A stretch of 63,765 bases of DNA, counting the filler, from Ministeria vibrans ATCC 50519 (taxonomy: Eukaryota; Protista; Filasterea): assembly GCA_943704425.1 (NCBI GenBank). It is 5 parts of 5 records of this genome, joined end to end, with 100 filler letters (N's around TTAATTAATTAA, not from the genome) between each part and the next. Parts side by side here need not be neighbours in the genome. Positions count along the whole stretch, not along the records: positions 26,949 to 49,962 come from CALSCP010000986.1; 4 more parts are not named here. One strand, written 5' to 3'. Both the position numbers and the translations under genes were made by a program. Shown here piece after piece: positions 31,011-48,909 of the stretch; within the stretch, counting starts at the first letter, position 1, and the number at the start of each line of letters is the position of its first letter. Below the pieces are notes generated by a model, which was not told the origin of the DNA, searched no databases, and saw nothing but the letters and a program-made list of their open reading frames with translations.

Positions 31011-33096
31011 TTATGGAGAAGAACAAGTGCCCCAGACGGGCAGACGAGACGCCGGAAGGAGAGTGGCGTCGGTGGCAAAGTCTTGAGGAAGAGAGGGCAC
31101 GAGAGGAACGCACCAAGAGGAAAGAGACTGGGAAAAGGAGACGGCAAGGTGGAAGAGAGAGCGAAGGCCTGCAGTGGGAACATTGGGAGTGCGCCAGGTG
31201 GACACATCACCATTGAAGGTAGTGGCACGGAAAAACATGAAGGACAGGTCAGTGGCCGCAGAGACATTCCATGAGCTGAGCGGCTGATTGAACATCTGAG
31301 CGTCCTGGAACATATTTGCAAAGTTGGTTCCGCGCGACACATCAAAACCCGTCAGATTCGCATTGAATTTCGAGTTGTAGAACATCAGAGAGAAGTCGGC
31401 GCACTCGTGTGTCGCCCAGTCATTCATCGGCTGAGAATACGCACCAGTGCTATCAAACATCTGTCGTACTGTTTCAACGCGAACGGGTCGCCAGTGTACA
31501 AGAGACTGATTGAACAACGGACACTGATAAAACATTTGGCGCATCGTCGTCACTTGCTCCACATTCCAATTTCCAATTGGTTGATTAAACTCCCTGCCAT
31601 TTAACAATAATAATAAAAAACAATATAAATAATATTAATATTATTGATATTATTATTGAGATAGTTGTTCTTGATTTGTTGTGTACAGTGCGTTGTTGAA
31701 TGTGTAGTCCATTTGTTCGACATTCGACGTGTCCCAATGGCCAATAATTCCATTGAATTTTCGCGCAGAAGAGAACATTGAACCGAAATTGGTCACCTGA
31801 AATGCACCCAACAAAACTTTTATTGAGTCACTTGGAATTTCAAGTCTTACTTTTGAGGTGTCAAATGAACTGATATTCCCATTAAATGCATAAGCTTGTT
31901 GGAACATTTGGCTCATATCGTTCACAGAAGAAGTCTAAAAAATGAAGGATTAGTACGTTTTCAATGGAAGTCGATAGGATTGTCTCGTACGTTCCATTGG
32001 GAAAGATCCTGATTGAACAGGCGAGCGTCGTAGAACATTTGTGCCATAGTGGTCACCTGAGTGTGCGTGTGTGAGAGAGAAAAAAGAAAAAGAAAAAACG
32101 ATGATCGCACACCTTTGAGACGTCCCATGCGTCGAGAGGCTGGTTGAAGAGACGCGCGGCGTAAAATGCACTTTTGAGAGACAGTGCTCCGGTTATGTCC
32201 CAGTTGTTGAGATTGCCCTGTGAACCAATGCTTGTGCCGCGGAAGAGCTCGTCAAAGTCCGTGACGTCGCGCAGGTCTGGGGAGTCTGTGGTGCGGAGGG
32301 TCATGAAGGAGAGATTTTTGAATTTGCCTTTGGCGTTGCCCATGCGAAAGCTGCCCCACTGTGTGATGGCAGTGAGTTTGTTGCGCTGGGCGGCGGTCAG
32401 GGTGGAGAGGGGCAGGCCGTTGATGATGCCTGTCATGCTGACTGTGTAGGTCCCTGTGCTCGCGTATTGGTGTGTGAGGGGGCTGGCAAGCGGTGAAGTG
32501 ACGTGCTCGGAGGCGGCACCATCGCCCCACGTAACGGTGAAGTTGTAGGCGTTGGAGGGGAACAGAGGAATGGAAATGTCACGAGAGGAGCTGCTGGACA
32601 GAGTCCATTCCATGACAAACGGCACGTAGCCACTGCAGTCTGCCCCGGTGTACTGGCTGAGACACGCACAGGTGTACGAAGTGCCCGCTGCCCCGGTGCA
32701 CGTGCCGCCATTGGCACAGGGCGACGAGAGACACGCGTCGTACTGGCAGGAGTGAGTGCCGTATGCATCGTGGCAGACTTCGCTGGCGCTGCACGGCGAA
32801 GAGGCACACGGCCGATTCACAAACGCCCCAAAATCAAGCAGCGTCTGCAGCAAATCAAACTTCTCGGCGACGCGCGTCACCGAGTCGGCCAGCGAGCTCG
32901 CCAGCGACTGCTTGAGCGTCGTCAGCTCCGCGACCACCGCCACGCCGCCCACCACCACCGCACCGTGCGCCGCGCTGTCCAGGTGCAGGTTGCCATCTTG
33001 AGAGCGCACGCGCGGCCCCGGCGGCGTGGGGGTCGTCGCGTGGGAGGCAGAGGCGAGTGCGAGCGCAACGACGATCAACAGGTTCTTGTTGATCAT
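31011..33096 (-). CDS. Secreted chimera: cubilin-N-like coiled coil + 2 EGF + PKD-like + BspA/DUF285 repeats
   Basis: Signal peptide; PRVRSQDGNLHL; CLSSPCANGGTC..YTCAC..YTGADC; FTVTWGDG..THQYASTGTYTV; multiple FNQPxxxWDVSxVTxMxxMF repeats; SWCV...PVWGTC end. Confidence 0.85.
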
Positions 33097-33818: not shown

Positions 33819-35211
33819 TTACAGGGCACTTGAGAGAAGAGAAAGACTTGCTCCAATGCGAGAAATGTCATCCATATCCGTCAGATTCTTAGGCGTTCCA
33901 CCAATGCAAAAAAGAATCTTTTCGCCCCCCATTTGTGAGGGATAGTTTGCCGGCAATTTATCCGCAGTCAACTTTTGTCCTTGTGCACTCGTGTAGTACA
34001 ACACAAGCGCCGCAGGACCACTGCCAGCCTCTGCAAACAAAGAAAAACCATACGTTTGAACATTCCTTTTTGTTTCGTTGTCTGACTTGTGTAGCTTTGA
34101 GCCCTTTCGAGTGTGGCAGTGTGGAGTGATTCACCAAAATTAATGCGCGTGTCCATTCGATACTAAAACGAGCGATTTAATGTCTTGTGTCCCTGCATCT
34201 TGTTTTTTCGTACCAGATAAAGAGCCGCCAAGTAATCGTTTCGAAGTGTCTAATAAAAACAAAGCGGTGCAATGCAGGCAAATATGAACAAATCGTAGTG
34301 GTGTTCGGTTTGGTTTGCTTCTGTTGTACCTCCAACGCGAAATCTCCACCGACACAATCAAACTCGACGGAGAAAATAGTGTCCTGTGGAGCAGTCAACA
34401 GAGGACCAAGAGTATTTTTGAAGGTCTCAATGACGTTATTGTCCAGGTTGCCTCGCACAACAATCAAAATGTGGGCGACAACCTGCAATTTCATGCAAAA
34501 TCAAAACGTAAATTCAGCGTTTTAGTCCACTGCAACTTACTTGTCTTGGGGGAGGGGGCACAGAAACGGTGACGGGTGGCGCTGGGAAGTACGTATAAGA
34601 CTGTAGTTGTTCGGTCGGACTTGTCTGCTCTCTTGGAAGCTGTTCTATTGCCGTAGCAATGGATCCTCGCGCTTGAAGGAACCTCTACAGTTACAGAAAG
34701 GTGGAATTTCAAGTTGGACAGAAGTGGAAAAAAAAATGCCTGTGGGGGAGTGTGTAACGCACCGGAACACACGAGGCAAGAATGGAGTCGATTTCACGGA
34801 GACGCTGGTGAGTGCTTGTCGGGATCGGTGCAGAATTCGAAGTTGAAGCGGACATTGCGAGCAGATCCAAAGACAGTCGTTGGCACTCCTTGACCCGCCG
34901 CAGGGTGTCCGCAACCTGGAGAGGAAAGAAGTGTTGGACAGTGCGTCATGGAGAGTGTCAATGGTGCGTTCTACGTCGCTCATGTCCGACAAGATCAGCA
35001 AATGAAGTTGTCAGCACCTCTCGCTCTAAGCAGCGCAGCTTGTAGTCACCGCTACCATAGGTTGTCGATGATGACATTCCCAAATTTCCCATTCTATTGT
35101 GCCTGATTGATGGAGGCGAGAGAGAGAGGAACAGAGAAAAAATNNNNNNNNGCGCAGCTTGTAGTCACCGCTACCATAGGTTGTCGATGATGACATTCCC
35201 AAATTTCCCAT
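33819..35211 (-). CDS. Hypothetical multi-exon protein, possibly N-myristoylated (MGNLGMS)
   Basis: Chain of minus-strand exons with GT-AG boundaries. No family recognised. Confidence 0.45.
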
Positions 35212-35607
35212 TCTATTGTGCCTGATTGATGGAGGCGAGAGAGAGAGGAACAGAGAAAAAATTAACTTTTTAGTTTTCTGCAGTTGATCTCGACCGAAGT
35301 CGGATGGAGATGATCAATAAAATTCTTTTTCTTCAATTAGTAGAGTGGTTTGTTTAGTGTACCATGGTTGATAATGTCATACATTAATCCTTATCGAACG
35401 ATTGAATCTGAGTGACCATAAGTCGAGGGGAAAATATTGAAAAGGGTATTGGATTTGGATTAATTTTGATTCTACGCGCTGTAATGAGGGGGTTTCTTTT
35501 TAATTTCATCACATCCAGCATTTACTTATGCCTTTACTTCTTTCTTTTGATCAATACTATTATTATTATTGTTTTTTCGTTCTGGGTTTCTGTTTTCAAT
35601 TTCAACT

Positions 35608-37067
35608 TTAAAAAAAACCCGCAACAAAGCCTTTCTCCTTGGCCTCGTAAGGAGGAGGGGCGCTACTGGACGATGAGCTGGGAATCGTGCGACGTCCCTT
35701 TTGGATCTCTCGATCGAGTGAGTCCTCTGCCGCACAGAGCGCCTTGAGCAGAGCAAAGAGTGCGTGTCCCTCCAGCGAATAGTGTCGACCAATCTCCTCT
35801 CGATAGTTCACCAATGGAAAAACCTAGAGAAAATTCAAAATAAGTCTTTTAAAAGAATACTTTGCCATGGATTACTCCCTAGCACTCTTCTCTCTTACTT
35901 GTGACGGGGCAAATCCCGATTTTTCCGCCACGACTTGGCGCGCCTGCGAAATTTGTTCGCTTGTCCACATTGAAGCGGGCGCAACGCGGACAGTCTCGTC
36001 AAGTTTGTCCACTTGACTCAGTACCACAATGGCTGGAACGCCTAGACAGCAATAATAATAATAACAATATTATTATTATTAATAACATATATTTTTATAG
36101 TAATATTTTTTGCGTATACTTACGGTGCTCTCGCGCTGCCGATACAAAAACTTTCATTCGTGAGTAGTACTCGTCGTTGTCGTATGCATTTGCCGGCTGA
36201 AAAAAAAGGTGTACACCGATGGTTAAATGAGTTGTTTGTACGTGTGCGCGTGCGACTCACCACAAGGAACATGATGGCATGGATGCGACGCGTCTCTGGA
36301 GCTTGCGAGAGATGTTCCGATCTCACGACCGTGTGCGTGCACTCCCAATCTTCGGGAAGGCGTCCTTCCAAAATGAACTGAAATTGACCTACATTATAGT
36401 GTAATAGGCTTAGAAAGAAAGTGGTTCTGAGCTGCTTGCGCTGTAGCTGATTGAAAAGAGGAAGAAGAACACCCCTCCATGTAATATTATACTGTGTTCT
36501 TTTCTTCGATTAAACAATAACATAATACACTATCTCGTCTTGCCAAGGATATCACGAGATCTTATCATCCACTTACCTCCTTCATAGTTCTCGGCGGACC
36601 AGCCCCAGCTGTCGAAAAGGCGGATATTCTCCGTCAGCGGATAGCTTTCGTACGTGCGGGTGACACCTTCGCCTGCCGCGTCGCCTGCCGCTTTTGCAAT
36701 GTGACGGTAGCCTCGACGACCATCGTCCTCTTGCAGCGCAGTAAACAGCGTGTTCACCGTGCTCGACTGGAAAACGGAGTTTTATCTTGTCGATTATGAA
36801 CGACACCTCAAAGACACACACGTCGTCTACCTTTCCCGCACCAAACGAGCCAAACAGAAGAATGTTCATGCTTCCTCCCTCCACGCCGCACTTGCGGGAG
36901 CAAGAGCTTGCAAACGAATGGATCTCTTGGGGGGTCGCGACATACGGAAGAGCTTTCGCTTCATCGTGGTCGCCACAGGACGCCCAGTCGTCGTCGTCGT
37001 TTCCGCTGGTCGCTTCTGCGCTGCCTTTGTGCTTTGGTGTCCGGACTCTTTGCTTAGCGTGGGACAT
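35608..37067 (-). CDS. IFI44-like P-loop GTPase, GTPase domain only (6 exons)
   Basis: NILLFGSFGAGKSSTVNT (G1), VTRTYESY, LFDSWG (G3), FILEGRLPEDW, RRIHAIMFLV, VVLSQVD (G4), KSGFAPSQVFPLVNY, ALLKALCAAEDSL; all collinear with IFI44/IFI44L. Confidence 0.82.
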
Positions 37068-37443
37068 TTGAATACGAGAAGTAAGAAAATTAAATGAATC
37101 CGAATGACTCAAACTGAGAGCCAGACGGACGGAAAAAAAATGTGGAGTTGACGAGGACCAAAAACGGTCATGTCCAATTCTCACGCTTTGGACGCCTGAG
37201 AGAACACCTCGCTACAAGACAGGAGGTCTATAAGGGTTTCATAGTTGGCCTCACCGAACTAGCTGAATGGAAACCGCCCTTTCGGAGCTCTACCGGGTAA
37301 AACAAACGAATTCTTGGCGAAAAAAAATTAAAGTCAACTACTGTTTTTTCCGTCCTTATAAAATTCAATCTGTACTCTCTCCCCTAGTCACTTTTCTTCT
37401 TCTTTTCCTCATAACTTGTTAGTTACCACTTCCCACCACCTTC

Positions 37444-38798
37444 ATGAGCAAAGCGACGACGGATACCTGCGTGGACGAAACGCAACTTGAGGTGCAAGGC
37501 AATGGATCGTTTCAGGCCACGCTCACGGTCCACGGACTGGCGAAGAAGCCCGATGGCTTTGAGATCGGGGTCTTAAGCCACACGACAGGGCAGCAGTGGG
37601 TGCAAAAGTTCACCGTATCTCAGCTGCAAAAGGTTTGCGCACTTTGTAGTTTGCAGAGTCGAAGACGGTGCCTTACACTGCTTTTTCCCCTTCGATTAAG
37701 ATATCGTGTGGCGAGCTCAGCGTCTCTCGTCTCGTAAAACTTGCGCGACAAGCTGTCATGTCACCCAGCCAAGTGTCTCATTACGCCTTTTCCTTTATTT
37801 CTGGCAAGGTATACAGTAGCGGCACAAGAGAGGTTGATTTTCCCCCTTTCAATATGGTTCTTCCGTAGAATGTTGACGCATTGACTGCGCCCGAGGGATG
37901 CGAACGCCACCGATCACCAGGTACAAACACACACACATGCAGGGCATGTAGAAGAGCATCTACTCACCCGGGTTTCGTCTTTCCTCCCAGGCAGCGGCGA
38001 TGTCCTCGCCCTCTCCATTGTGGATGGCGACGGCGATGGTGACGAGCAGCGATTCTGGTTCCCGCTGCCGCAAACACGACCTCCCATGTCTACGACGAGT
38101 GCATCAACACCACGCGCATCGAGCAGGGGCTCATGCGCCTCTTGCACAGCGCTTGGTGCCGAAATGAAGCAGNNNNNNNNNNNNNNNNNNNNNNNNNNNN
38201 NNNNNNNNNNNNNNNNNNNNNNNNNNNNNNNNNNNNNNNNNNNNNNNNNNNNNNNNNNNNNNNNNNNNNNNNNNNNNNNNNNNNNNNNNNNNNNNNNNNN
38301 NNNNNNNNNNNNNNNNNNNNNNNNNNNNNNNNNNNNNNNNNNNNNNNNNNNNNNNNNNNNNNNNNNNNNNNNNNNNNNNNNNNNNNNNNNNNNNNTTGAA
38401 TTGTCCGCACGAAGAGGGGGAGCATTTTTGGTAAGGTGTCCGTTTGTTTAGATTATTATTCATTCTAATATCATTGTACAGGTGCGTATACATCCACGTC
38501 GTGGACCAGTTCAGGAGGTTACAAACCGGACCCCAATGCGTTCTTGTTTGCTCTGGGGCCAAAACCAGGGAAGATGACGCGCAGGGGAACGAACCAAGAA
38601 ATGTACGACCATCCGAGCTACGGTCCGAGCTTTGGGGCCAATCAAGACTTGCTCTTGCATCCCAATTGCATGACACAAGCGTCAGCTACCAGCCATGTTG
38701 GCAGCGCATTCGCGCCAATCCCTGAAATTGGTGCACATCTTGACCAAGGCACTCAAGCATTCCAGGTTGATGCCCTTGAGGTGTTCAGTGTCAATTGA
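37444..38798 (+). CDS. TLDc-domain protein with an unassigned N-terminal beta-head; N gap inside
   Basis: GGAFGAYTSTSW..DPNAFLFAL..HPSYGPSFG..DL..FQVDALEVFSV. Confidence 0.82.
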
Positions 38799-39539
38799 AT
38801 ACAATAATCAATAATCTGTGTGAAGAAAAGAGGAACTTTTTGTTTCAAAACAATACTGCTGCTCGTTTATTCGACAGGCGGATTAGAAAGATTGATCAAT
38901 GATCATATATATCTCTGTCAGTTCGAGCTCGTTTTACTACTTGAGACATTCTATAATCTATCTAAGAAGGAAGGACGGGAGGATCGTTTCGCTGGATGTT
39001 TCGCTTTTCGTTCACAATCTATTTTTTTTATTCTATTCAGTCATTAAGTCATTATTAAGTATTACTATTGTTAATTTCACTCAGAGAATAATACATTTTT
39101 CTCTACAAATAATTATTATTGATTTTCCAAAACGCAAAAGTTTAAAAAGGAACTTTTTTTTTACCCACACACACAATAAACAATTTTTTACATAGACTCG
39201 CAGCTTCGATTGTTGCACCGAACGGATATTTGGTTACTAATACGTGTTCAGGAGAAATCACAATGTCTAACCGGTTTCCGGGAATGGTCCGAAATGCGAT
39301 TTCACAGGCAAATCGGTTTGCCTCTTTTGTCCATATTCAACGTAGAGAAAAAAAAGAAGAAGAAACAAAAGAATTTAAGATGTTTTTAGATGCGGCTCCT
39401 GATCATTCGTTGAACCCGTGGGCGCCTGAGATTGGAAACTATTTGACTTGTATTATTGCCAAAATGCACGATTGAATGTATGCAATATCATTACTAGCTA
39501 CAGTATGATAATAATAATTTGAAGAAGAAGAATACAACC

Positions 39540-39711: not shown

Positions 39712-40048
39712 TCAGTGCTCCATTGCAACAACCTCCCCTTGGATCTTTTCAACCAAATGCTCTGCAGTAATCAGCCTACGCTGAACAACCGCCAACTGTC
39801 GCTCAAGACCTCTCTTCTCCTTCGTTAACTCGCGCACTTTCCTCTGGCCAGCCTGAAGTAGGTCCTTCTTCTTCGCTAACCTGGCCTTTTCGCGCTCTTC
39901 CTTCTTCCGCTGCTGTTCCGCCGCATCCGCTGCCGTCCGCATCTTCTTCCGTGGGCTTTCACCGTTCTTGGACTTGGCCGCAGCCGTCTCCTCTTCCTCT
40001 TCCTCCTCCTCCTCTTCCTCTTCCTCCTGCTCCTCCTCCTCCTCCTCC

Positions 40049-40080
<32 letters not shown>

Positions 40081-42032
40081 CTCCTCTTCTTCTTCTTCTT
40101 CATCGCCGCGAAGACGCTTCGTTGACACCTTTTGCACTTGAACTCGCACCTTCTCCTCAAGGCGATTGTATGATGCACGCAGTCGCACCCCAACCACCAG
40201 AGACGGAACAGGACTCGCACCAACCCACGTCAACACACACGGCAGCGACACCTTCAGTGGCTCTTGCGAAATTCGATCCGACATCCGCGTCACCGTGCGC
40301 GGAGGGGACACTTGCAGCGCCCAAGAGCGCTCCTGTCCCGCATCCAGCTCCAGCTTAAACAGTCGGCGGTCCTCCTTGTACACCTGTGCACCATCCGCAT
40401 TCGTCACATCCAATGCCACCGTAAACTCTCGGCCAATCGGCAGTGGCTGGGTGTCTAGAATTTCGAGCGAGAGCCGGTTGGGCCGCACATGAAGCGGGCG
40501 CTCGGCCGTGAGTAGCTGCTCGTCATCGGTGTCTTCGCCAGTGTTGAGGTTGAGAGAGCAGCGCAGGGTGAGAGCTTGTTCGTTCAAGTAGTCTGCGGGA
40601 CCGGCAATACCCCAGAGCTGAGTAGCATTCACAGTATAAAATCGACCTTGCGCCACTCCCGATGTTTTGATCGGCACGCTGCGGTAGGGCGCGTCGAACT
40701 CGTCCACAACAGCAAGCTCGTCTCCCTCCACGCTCAGCTCAAAGAATGCATGGGGGTACTTGTCGTTTAGAGCGTGAGGGGGCAAAAAGTTACCCTTGGC
40801 GTCAATGGCACGCACATGGAGCGCACGGCCACCGCGTTTGTTGAGAGTAATTTCACAAGGTGTCGAGTCGGAGCAGTTGGTGGCGGGGTCGCAAAATTGA
40901 AGGGTCACGGGAGGTCCATAGGAGGGCGCGACGTTGTACGTGACAGATATGGGTCGGATTTGTTGGCAACATTTCTTCAGTGGGGCGCCTGCAGCAGGCG
41001 CAATGGAGAAGGTGAGCTTGTGCTCGCCAACCTGTTCGGTGGGCACTCTGTACGAGTAGTACACCTCCGTCATGTCGGGGACACCACCTAAAATGATAAT
41101 TAATGAGGACTTGAAAGCGATAGAATACGTTCACACTACACTGACCATTTTCGTTGGGCGTGAACTGCTTGAGCGTACAGTCGCGAGGCAGCGGTACGCT
41201 CTGGTTCTTGATGAGCACCTCGGTGATGGTGACTTTGGTGGCGAGGGAGGTACCGTTGGCGAGGCGCGGGTTCTTGGGGACTACCGTGCCCGTGTGCATG
41301 CTATCCACTTGCACCGCAAGGTACTTGGTCTCTGTGATACAAAAAACGGCCACCGTTTAGAAGGGTCCTTTGCTGTGCATGACTGTATATAATCATATAA
41401 TATATTAGGCATGTACCGTTCTGTTCAAGTCGGTCAGGAAAAGACAATGGTCGAAAGGCGCTTGGAATGAGACGGTCAACAGAGCGCTTTCCCACCGCGG
41501 GCGCCTTTTTGCTTGAGGTGCTGTCGTCCACTAGCTGGTACTTGGTCGGCGTGTCCAGATGGGCCTCATCAATGATCACGTCGATGGCACCGTCAGTCGT
41601 AGACGAGCGAGTGAAGTACTTCACTTTGCCAATGGGCACGACGCTGTCGCGCGAGCGTGCGCTCTCCCCGTGTACACGGATGACTTCCCCCATTTCGATA
41701 GTCTTTGAGCCATTGTGCACGCGACCGTACTGCGCCATGGTCATCTCACTGCGTACCTCGTTGTGACCGAGTGCCAGTTGAGAAGTCACGTCAATGACCC
41801 ACTATACAATGTGGAAAAGAAGAATAAGGAAGAGGCTAAAATAAAGGGTCAATGATTGACCTTGGTGTCGTTATTTGTGACGTTCTTCATCCAACGTCCG
41901 AAGAGCCTGGCAACATTATCCTTCTCTCCGCGTTGCAGATGGCCATTCTGAGCCGCCTGAAGGTACGTTGTCTGGTAAATGCCCACGTGAATGTAGAGAG
42001 AGAGAGAGTTCAAGAGAGAGAGAGAGAGAGTT

Positions 42033-45524: not shown

Positions 45525-48500
45525 ATGAGCTCTCGCGGCGGAAGGGAGAGTGAAATCCAAGCGAGCAAAGGAACCAAGTCAGACCGTTCTGCTCCCAACC
45601 CCGCTGACGGTGGAAGGACAAGCAAAAGATCCAAAAGACCTTTGGAGGAGAGTGGTAAAGGTGATCTCGGTGTTTGGAATGTATGGTGGGAGGCGCTGAG
45701 TCTTGTCTTGTGCAGAAGAACCAAAAGAGCCGTCTGGAAAAAAGCAAAGAACGGGCGCGCTGTCCGTAAACTCACCAGGTAATGCCGGCAAGTGTCTGGT
45801 TATGTTCTAATGGTTCATACAGGCCCTGGAAGCTCGACGAAGGGCAAAGGCGCCGCGAACACTGTAAGTTTTTCTTCAATGGATCACTTCTGGTTCACGT
45901 TGATATTTCGCTCGCGCCTTGCTTGCATGCTTCCGTTGACCTATCCATTGCCCTATGCGATGGAAAGCACGTCCTGTAAAGACGCTTGTGTCTTGCTTCG
46001 TGGTATTTGTCGCCCTCCCAGGGAGATTGAACAAACTTTCCTTCTTTTGTTTTTTTGACAGCTTGTCGACCCGACCTTTCTTGTTGACCGATGTTTTAGC
46101 AAGACGCCAAGAGAATGTCAATCGCGCTTACCTTCTCGCCTTTGTATTGTCGTTTTATCAAGACACCAAAAGAATGTCTTGTGTAATGTGTTGACATTCT
46201 TGCCTTTTTATGTTTTCTTTCTTTCCCTCTTTGTCGTTTTGTTTTTCCCTCTTTCTTTCCCTCTTTTTTTTTTTTGTAAATGAGTGAACCTTGATGCGTG
46301 CAGGTTCCGATACTTGGGACTTTGGACTCTTCCCGCTGGGGTTCTTCTTAAACTGGATCAACCCAAAACTGACCATCAATCTCTGTAGGCGTCCACCAGC
46401 ACGTCAACTCCTACAAACACGACTGTCGCAGCCAATGCGCGCACTGCCACCTGGAAGATGCGTAAGTGAAAGACTAGAGCTACGCACGCTCAAGTCGTAA
46501 CCCGAAACTGTTGTAGTGAACGATGCTATGACCTCGACACGTCTTCGTGATGTGCTTCTTCTGCCCCCCTTTTTCGATGCGGCCGATGAAGAGATCGTGG
46601 CCATGTTGGACGAGTTCCTGCAGCTGCCTGGCCTGGCCTCTGGCACCAGATTCATCAAGGCGTACGGCGAGCCCGAAAAGCAGCTTAACGTCGACCAAAC
46701 ACACGAATTCTTCAACAAGCTGTTTCTTGAAGAGGACCGACCAAAAAACTATCGACCGCACCAACCCACGATGGAACTCATTGAGGAAGGAATGTGGAAG
46801 CTCCGTAAGACTAAGATACAATGAATAGAGTGATACGATTTAACCCTTTATAACATAACATTCCCTAATTTGTAGTGCAGGCCAAGCGAGCGAGTGCCAA
46901 AGACGACGACAGGCGTATCATCCCCCCTGGTAAGCACAAAATTAATATACAACCCTCTCATTCCCACAGTGTATGGCGATTCTCCACTTCTCTCTCATTT
47001 GTTTCTTTCTCCCTCTTTTCTCTCTTTGTCTATCCCTCTCTCTGTCTCTCCCTCTCTCTGTCTCTCCCTCTCTCTGTCTCTCTCTGTCTCTCTGTCTCCC
47101 CCTCTCTCTCTGTCTCTCTCTCTGTCTCTCTCTGTCTCTCTCTCTGTCTATTCCTCTCTCTGTCTCTCCCTCTCTCTGTCTCTCCCTCTCTCTGTCTCTC
47201 TCTCTCTCTGTCTCTCCCTCTCTATCTCTCTCTATCACTTTGTTTCTATCTCCCTCCTCTTTCTGCATTCGTGCAAAATACGTCCCCGTGAATAGATTTT
47301 AATCATGTTGTCATTTGTTGAGAACGCCTTTTGTCGCTCATAACGTTTTCTCATTGCATTTGCGATTGTTCGTTTCTTTTTTCCAGGTCCATATGCCTTC
47401 CTCCCGCATGCCAAGGTTGATGTCAGCACTCTGTTCTCCCTCACCGACGAGATCTCCCAGTGGCCATTTAGCATGGTGAACAGCCGTGCTCTGTACGTCC
47501 GCCCTTGCTATGGCGATCTTTACAACCTCGCTTACAGCACGCTCATGGACTCACCACCTCATACCACTCGTGTTCTCCTCATTGGCAGTCCCGGCACTGG
47601 CAAAAGCGCTTTTCTCAACTACGTCCTCTGCCGACTTCTCCACAAAGGCATTCCCGTGGTCATCAGTCGGCCCGTTCTCGACGATGAAAGGCCAAGTTTC
47701 CTTCTGCTCAAAGTTGATGCTGGGGATCGTCTCGTCGTCAGTGCGGCTCATCCAACGAAGCCTGACACCGTCCCTGACAACTGCGTCGTTCTCCATGATC
47801 CGTGTGACGGTGGTCGGGTACCCCCCTTGCATTGTCGCGTCCTTGTCGCTTCCTCGCCCGAGCTTGCCAACTACAAAGAGTTTGCGAAACTTCATGTTTT
47901 AAGGCTCTACATGCCGCCGTGGTCTCTCGACGAAGTCTTGGCGATGCAGCTCCAGCTGTCCGACGCGGACGTTCGCAACCGGTTTGAGCTCTACGGGGGG
48001 ATTATTCGTCACATCAAAGACCATGAGCAACAGCAACTTGAGGTAGCGCGAAAGAGGGCCATCAACACCGTCGAACTCGAACGTCTCCGTCACGTCCTTC
48101 TCTCCGGTGTGGTTGCAAAGGAACACGGCAATCTCCCGTCGCACATGGTGCTTCACTACGTGCCCAATGAGGACTTTACTTCCTTCTCACTTGAGTACGC
48201 CTCGCCAGCAACCCAGCGGGCCTTGATGCGCCGATTCACCACTGAGCGTCGTGAGGAACTCTTTGCTCACTACCACGCGTCGCTTCGCGAAACAAGCCTT
48301 GCGACCGAAGCAGGGCGCGTCTGGGAGAGTCTTGCGTTGTCCAGCTTGTGCATGGCCGAGTTGAAGGACGGCTACGTGTTGAAGCCGCTGAATGACGCGG
48401 CCGTGAAGTACGAGAGGCCATCTGCGTTGTTCGCGAATGCGACGGTGTCCGAGGAGGCGAGGAAAGATAACGTCGCGGCTGTGCTTCAGGACAACAAGAT

Positions 48501-48909
48501 GTTCCTTCCGCTCGAGACCAACTTCCCCGTTGTCGACGCGCTGGTGCAGTGCGAGGTTCCTTTGAAGCGCAAGCGCACTTTGAAGCGCAAACGCACTTCG
48601 AAGGGCAAAGACGTAGCGGTGCTTGGTCTGCAAGTGACCATTGCCGACACGCACCCGCCCTCACGTGGTGGTCTTCGCAAGCTTGAGAAGATCCTGGGCC
48701 CACTCTTCGCCAAGCTACACATTGTCTTTGTGCTCGACGCGGGTAGGCTTAAGCACCCTGCCAAATTTGGTGCGCTGCCGATTGCAAAGGCGTCCAACGA
48801 ACGGTTTGTCCGTGGGGAGGAGGCGCGCTACAAGGCGATCCCACAGTGGCGCCTGGTCATTCCAACTAGCCGTTTGAAGGTAAAGCACCACTCGCGTGGT
48901 ACACTCTGA
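45525..48909 (+). CDS. Crinkler/RHS-type effector: header + P-loop NTPase + restriction-endonuclease fold
   Basis: LYVRPCY, LLIGSPGTGKS, VASSP..NYKEF, LYMPPWSLDE, RFELYGGIIR, SHMVLH, GRVWESLA, NFPVVDAL, GLQVTIADTHP. Upstream exons (46516-, 46876-, 47388-) splice in frame. Confidence 0.85.

Follow-up and report, generated by a model that had tools for sequence, protein, structure and literature searches.

Few antiviral genes of vertebrates are induced as strongly as IFI44 and IFI44L, yet their mode of action is poorly understood. The locus described here raises the question of whether the two domain types that these animal proteins carry in one chain, a TLDc domain and a GTPase domain, can serve a protist as two separate proteins that belong together. 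It lies in a stretch of 63,765 nucleotides from Ministeria vibrans ATCC 50519 (assembly GCA_943704425.1), hereafter the window, within the part taken from CALSCP010000986.1 (positions 26,949 to 49,962; all positions count along the whole window). Here a minus-strand gene for a P-loop GTPase stands head-to-head with a plus-strand gene for a TLDc protein, and these are two real, divergently transcribed, spliced and expressed nuclear genes. From what follows we infer that the GTPase is kin to IFI44, that the two products are coupled physically or functionally and that they have a role in defence. That the GTPase and the TLDc protein act together, as a two-protein counterpart of the animal TLDc-plus-GTPase chain of IFI44 and IFI44L, is the reading we put forward, tentatively, and on which we are ourselves divided.

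A stand-alone GTPase gene

An earlier note on this DNA, made from sequence alone, had described a stand-alone six-exon minus-strand gene with IFI44-like GTPase motifs and no TLDc domain, lying about 376 bp head-to-head from a divergent gene that ends in a TLDc domain, and the two genes, the GTPase motifs and the spacing were borne out. The GTPase gene runs from 37067 to 35608 and its six exons (Table 1), spliced from the window sequence, encode a product of 328 amino acids in which every GTPase motif quoted in that note is present. Its five introns (64, 188, 64, 82 and 75 nt) are all of the GT..AG type, and each of them is found spliced out in RNA-like contigs of X10, X15 and X17, which represent three studies, and never in the DNA run X1; the sequencing runs compared carry the labels algae, seawater and marine metagenomes. 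A single 959-nt contig from X15, matching window 35629-37059, covers exons 1-3, 5 and 6 and shows four of the five junctions, and both junctions of exon 4 are present in the X15 joints table.

RNA cover upstream of the gene stops at about 37093, so the ATG at 37067 is taken as the start and no TLDc exon lies upstream of it; likewise, no RNA contig joining the six exons adds an upstream exon. With 65 residues ahead of its P-loop, the GTPase product is too short at the N-terminal end to include a TLDc domain. A paralogue was looked for within the same piece and none was found. Intron 4 (36042-36123) consists of AT-rich simple repeats of the ATT/AAT type, over which DNA depth in X1 climbs from about 150 on either side to about 14,800 and loose ends are numerous; this spike indicates that the genome has the same simple repeat at many other sites.

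The TLDc gene and the closing of an assembly gap

The plus-strand gene begins at ATG 37444 and, once an assembly gap is filled, comprises six exons encoding 458 amino acids with the TLDc domain at the C-terminus. Poly(A) addition occurs near 38829, where RNA contigs have a loose end. The N run that interrupts the gene hides part of the domain, and we closed it with L002, a 2168-nt Logan contig of the same species that was reached via fragment P0005 from a search with the last exon. L002 matches window 37467-38171 at 99.0% identity and 38400-39304 at 97.8%, and it spans the gap, whose true content is 556 nt in place of the 223 N of the window. Read in frame from exon 4, this content begins with a further 155 nt of that exon, continues with an intron of 57 nt (GT..AG) and closes with 344 nt of exon 5. 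Reads or contigs of four runs extend with real sequence beyond both gap edges. Four of the five introns of the gene are supported by RNA, and the one inside the gap is predicted from sequence alone. The window letters at 38396-38399 are wrong, reading TTGA where every run and L002 have TTGACG, and the two missing bases create a false in-frame TGA before IVRTKRG.

Compared with the Pfam TLD profile (PF07534, curated cut-off 24.5 bits), the last exon scores 35.8 bits (E 9.7e-9) as it stands in the window and 41.5 bits (E 1.7e-10) in L002, in both cases over profile positions 69-169. Exon 5 matches positions 6-67 (18.4 bits, E 0.0022), thereby supplying the N-terminal 40% of the domain, which lies in the gap. 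The sequence thus joins in frame across the gap and the TLDc domain is complete; it belongs to the family by a score above the curated cut-off and by a match along the whole domain. A script-joined model of the protein aligns to a stand-alone TLD protein at about 35% identity (E 1.7e-20); a PDB sequence search with the TLDc exon was uninformative. The stretch of exon 4 inside the gap is heptad-like and gives a weak Trimer_CC match (E 0.0014). Read from its sequence, then, the protein is composed of an N-terminal region of unrecognised fold, a predicted coiled coil and a complete C-terminal TLDc domain.

Two observations concern TLDc genes elsewhere. A 3-kb metagenome contig, L011, has four consecutive TLDc-like segments in positions 1-2506, which are either copies in tandem or parts of one multi-TLDc gene of a protist. 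In contigs L003-L006 (23-26% GC; for example L004, 157-1029) a 166-aa TLD open reading frame (ORF) directly follows an ORF with a coiled-coil-like end. The alignment to the TLDc model crosses the TAA between the two ORFs, which may be one protein with TAA read as a sense codon, as in ciliates, and with the order of coiled coil and TLDc domain described above.

Table 1. Positions of the exons of both genes, of the assembly gap and of the features between and within the genes
Feature	Position	Strand	Basis
GTPase exon 1, ATG 37067, residues 1-79, ends in GSFGAGK of the P-loop	36831..37067	-	RNA joint 36766/36831 in X10, X15, X17
GTPase exon 2, residues 80-142, Ser80 completes G1; G3 DSWG at 36602-36613	36577..36766	-	RNA joints
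GTPase exon 3, motifs ILEGRLP and RIHAIMFLV	36261..36388	-	RNA joints 36386/36575, 36196/36261
GTPase exon 4	36124..36196	-	RNA joints
GTPase exon 5, G4-like SQVD at 36007-36018	35899..36041	-	RNA joints
GTPase exon 6 with stop codon, motifs VFPLVNY and ALLKALCAAED, Ser/Pro-rich tail	35608..35823	-	RNA joint
Divergent intergenic region, 376 bp	37068..37443	.	RNA depth and contig pieces
Arm 1 of the mirrored element (GTCAACT..TTTTTTCCGTCC in the direction of the GTPase gene), 59-85 nt upstream of ATG 37067	37127..37152	-	
Arm 2 of the mirrored element, 88-111 nt upstream of ATG 37444; RNA cover begins shortly after it, at 37363	37333..37355	+	
TLDc gene exon 1, ATG 37444	37444..37632	+	RNA joint 37632/37701
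TLDc gene exon 2	37701..37808	+	RNA joints
TLDc gene exon 3	37869..37920	+	RNA joints
TLDc gene exon 4, first part; a further 155 nt inside the gap, coiled coil	37991..38172	+	loose ends continue in frame
Assembly gap, N run 38173-38395 and 4 unreliable edge letters	38173..38399	+	L002 706-1261; loose ends of X1, X10, X15, X17 match L002
TLDc gene exon 5, end (IVRTKRGSIFG)	38400..38430	+	RNA joint 38430/38482
TLDc gene exon 6 with stop codon; TLD profile positions 69-169 of 170	38482..38798	+	Pfam match
TLDc hypervariable patch, around a conserved YGPxFG..DL..NC core	38583..38725	+	allele comparison

Family membership of the GTPase

The GTPase product contains a G1 motif GSFGAGKS at residues 73-80, split by intron 1, a G3 motif DSWG at 131-134 followed by Trp135, and a G4-like SQVD at 218-221. 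These three stand in the canonical order and spacing of TRAFAC GTPases, SQVD being a variant of [NT]KxD. GSFGAGKS and DSWG-W also agree with the motifs that a preprint on IFI44 gives for IFI44 and IFI44L (G1 GxxxxGKS; G3 DxxG and then a hydrophobic residue). In a language-model atlas of 7.7 million clusters, a cluster named 'Interferon-induced protein 44-like family protein' ranked third for exon 6 with a score of 0.78, and it is the only named family near this C-terminal exon; because IFI44 was the prior hypothesis, the chance appearance of that very family among so many clusters is unlikely. Beyond G3, the motifs ILEGRLP, RIH, SQVD, V-NY and AL..L.AA.D appear to be collinear with those of IFI44L. 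The gene thus appears to encode a stand-alone P-loop GTPase of the septin/Era-like (TRAFAC) kind whose post-G3 and C-terminal motifs look IFI44-like, and a kinship of its product to IFI44 is, on these sequence features, likely.

Several results weigh against this kinship. Searches of Pfam, NCBIfam and PADLOC with single GTPase exons gave no match, and neither did a search of PDB sequences with exons 2, 3, 5 and 6. Atlas scores below 0.9 are leads only, and that of the IFI44-like cluster falls in this range. Moreover, septins presumably share the sequence context of the P-loop (GKSSTVNTLF) and the strand motif RIH to the same degree as IFI44. Other searches returned the species itself: a phmmer search with exon 2 against 1.84 billion representatives found only the same-species fragment P0001, a prokaryote-style gene call on a metagenome scaffold, together with low-complexity matches; the exon 1 ORF found only P0007, a same-species genomic read-through product; and a homologous-protein search with exon 6 found none. 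In the published literature we found no report on IFI44-like genes in algae or protists.

The GTPase might instead belong to another septin/Era-like lineage (septin or paraseptin, AIG1/GIMAP-like, IRG-like or YfjP-like) outside the IFI44 family, and its motif resemblance to IFI44 would then reflect superfamily-wide features. The atlas neighbours of exon 2 point in that direction, being N-terminal fragments of septin, MMR_HSR1, AIG1 and Dynamin_N proteins (scores 0.80-0.84) and not IFI44, and so does the ranking of the script-joined GTPase model against 148 E. coli ORFs by phmmer, where YfjP came first (E 0.029) and Era second (E 0.18), both non-significant; the score of the exon 6 lead, only 0.78, leaves further room for such a lineage. 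However, the product has DSWG and SQVD where septins have DTPG and AKAD, and by established motif knowledge it differs from the AIG1 signatures as well; no exon gave a Septin or AIG1 match in Pfam, exon-sized queries being weak ones. The IFI44-like cluster at exon 6 and the apparent collinearity of ILEGRLP, V-NY and AL..L.AA.D with IFI44L also speak for IFI44, and we consider an origin in another lineage unlikely.

Allelic variation in the TLDc gene

Comparison of the window with L002 revealed a sharply localized difference between alleles of the TLDc gene. Thirteen nucleotide differences fall within the 114 nt from 38583 to 38696, affecting 10 codons, and all are nonsynonymous, while the remainder of the compared gene region differs at only 7 of 990 nt (Fisher p 3e-9 against 13/114) and the introns are identical at 247 of 249 positions. 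A third haplotype, seen in X1 and X10, adds four nonsynonymous changes and one synonymous change and extends the patch to 38725; its H>N change at 38694 is common to L002. In the GTPase gene, the G domain as covered by allele L007 (exons 1-4) is unchanged at the amino-acid level, and reads show E238K, Q239E and E296D outside that region compared with five synonymous changes. The clustering in the TLDc gene suggests diversifying selection on what may be one protein surface, or else gene conversion by a paralogous copy, and is in keeping with a role of the conflict (arms-race) type.

The shared intergenic region and the case for one unit

Measured between ATG 37067 and ATG 37444, the distance separating the genes is exactly 376 bp. 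Approximately 240 bp of this region (about 37094-37335) are bare of RNA contigs, and such a stretch between the genes probably makes it a shared divergent promoter. An inverted repeat of about 25 nt, the mirrored element of Table 1, places one arm upstream of each gene, oriented alike with respect to that gene; allele L007 conserves it, and its 12-mer has no other occurrence in the window. As a miniature inverted-repeat transposable element (MITE) it was rejected, its DNA depth being single-copy and its 12-mer unique in the window.

The case for joint action begins with domain content, the two domain types of the pair being those fused in IFI44. The common 376-bp region with its untranscribed stretch and the occurrence of both mRNAs in three RNA data sets add to it. 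In its fullest form the proposal is a trans-acting two-gene pairing of IFI44 type in a protist, with one divergent promoter and a TLDc partner under diversifying selection, representing an ancient defence or stress module that predates animals and interferon; taken as a whole we think this improbable. On the working reading of joint action itself, a single short divergent promoter would control both genes. The GTPase would provide a nucleotide-dependent switch or oligomeriser and the TLDc protein, with its coiled coil, an adaptor contacting a target such as the V-ATPase or a pathogen factor; the patch of amino-acid changes would fit an arms-race surface.

A number of points count against any such unit. 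Head-to-head pairs are common in compact genomes. Although both transcripts were found in the same three RNA data sets (X10, X15 and X17), contig presence and depth cannot show co-regulation, and as a significant shared promoter motif the mirrored element failed, since shuffles of the region equalled it 22 times in 300 for an exact repeat and 99 times in 1000 for a gapped one. The recurrence of the pairing in relatives, to which the earlier note had looked, did not materialize: scans for related loci with exon 2 (metagenomes and viral contigs) and exon 6 (viral contigs) turned up no relative with the pairing, and four metagenome contigs with TLDc relatives, only 1.2-3 kb long, carry no GTPase. 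Finally, one study (preprint) reported that IFI44 exerts its antiviral effect even without its GTP-binding region, which leaves the mechanism in doubt for the animal protein too.

Alternatively, an IFI44-like GTPase gene and a real TLDc gene, functionally unrelated, may simply have come to share an intergenic region in a gene-dense genome, the TLDc protein being a family of its own (N-terminal region, coiled coil, TLDc) with a separate role. By the account of the earlier note, head-to-head pairs are common throughout the window, and the lack of a paired relative and the performance of the mirrored element against shuffles sit well with this explanation. The TLDc protein has an independent architecture with its domain at the C-terminus, and a similar layout, a coiled-coil-like stretch followed by TLDc, occurs in an AT-rich protist contig. 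The four tandem TLD segments on L011 indicate that a protist can have several TLDc genes, and with more copies chance adjacency becomes more probable. On the other hand, chance would have had to bring together exactly the domain types fused in IFI44, where by our own estimate, not computed for this genome, one of two neighbours would bear a given rare domain in about 0.1-1% of cases, and the co-occurrence of both transcripts in the RNA data sets also counts on the side of a functional pair. We regard chance adjacency as rather unlikely, and retain joint action of the GTPase and the TLDc protein as our working reading.

Origin of the two-gene arrangement

The arrangement bears on how the pair could be related to the animal fusion. 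In IFI44 the TLDc domain precedes the GTPase region, and both lie on one polypeptide; here the TLDc domain is on the opposite-strand neighbour of the GTPase gene. Because the genes are head-to-head, neither a simple split nor a read-through fusion links them. The preprint locates the G1 motif of IFI44 at residues 193-201, which places the GTPase region in the C-terminal half of that protein. The TLDc domain of IFI44 is described as the most divergent member of its family, about 15% identical to the others (PMC5614904), unlike the domain found here, a canonical Pfam TLD that shares about 35% of its residues with stand-alone TLD proteins. The suggestion of the earlier note that the pair is a pre-fusion ancestor or a fission product consequently fits poorly, the genes being on opposite strands and the canonical TLD standing C-terminally behind an N-terminal region of its own; a simple fission product or a ready-to-fuse IFI44 precursor is unlikely.

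Were joint action to hold true, the separate, co-transcribed partners would offer a natural split system for the mutual dependence and the binding targets of the GTPase and the TLDc protein, and the origin of the TLDc-GTPase pairing would move far outside animals. If confirmed, the pair would add a form divided between two genes to a domain pairing already known, and the hypervariable patch in the TLDc domain provides a testable hint of host-pathogen conflict. If the GTPase belongs elsewhere, an ordinary neighbouring gene pair and an interesting polymorphic TLDc protein remain.

Surroundings of the locus

Tail-to-tail with the TLDc gene lies a minus-strand neighbour (39712-41073), a 453-aa ORF without a Pfam match that has a Glu-rich tract at about 39980-40100 and probably extends upstream over an intron near 41090-41150. 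On the other side, a minus-strand ORF of 347 aa (32053-33096) has EGF, PKD and DUF285 (BspA-like repeat) matches and is of a surface-protein type common in marine protists. A plus-strand ORF of 478 aa (47473-48909) has only weak P-loop matches (AAA_16 and RHSP) and is unrelated in sequence to the GTPase. Between the first two, the same approximately 111 nt occur at 35033-35143 and 35152-35262 on either side of a run of 8 N (35144-35151), most likely an assembly duplication and not a real tandem repeat.

Comparison with known systems

The GTPase resembles septins, AIG1/GIMAP, IRG and Era/YfjP proteins (TrmE-Era-EngA-YihA-septin-like) in the context of its P-loop, GKS[ST]-x-[IV]-N-x-L. With these GTPases it also has in common a hydrophobic strand containing H after G3 as well as the order and spacing of G1, G3 and G4, and the atlas neighbours and the E. 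coli ranking point there. It differs from these GTPases in that no septin G3 or G4 signature, septin unique element or AIG1 conserved box was recognised in it, and no exon gave a Pfam match to these families.

With canonical TLDc proteins (OXR1, NCOA7, mEAK7/TLDC1 and TBC1D24) the product of the second gene shares a C-terminal TLDc domain placed behind other modules and a Pfam TLD score above the cut-off. OXR1 and NCOA7 are named as partners of the V-ATPase (PMC8294626), and TBC1D24 couples TLDc to GTPase regulation (PMC5614904). The protein described here differs from them in an N-terminal region in which only the coiled coil is recognised as a domain, in the GTPase gene that adjoins it and in the allelic hypervariable patch within its TLDc domain.

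IFI44 is itself listed among the TLDc proteins (PMC8294626; PMC5614904). The differences from IFI44 and IFI44L (TLDC5) are that the M. vibrans locus encodes two proteins on opposite strands, that the TLDc domain is C-terminal, following about 290 residues that include the coiled coil, that it is canonical where the IFI44 type is very divergent (PMC5614904), and that the host is without an interferon system. The likenesses are a G1 of the form GxxxxGKS, a G3 of the form DxxG followed by a hydrophobic residue, a G4 that is weak or variant, an IFI44-like cluster near the C-terminal exon and the presence of the TLDc and GTPase domain types within one locus.

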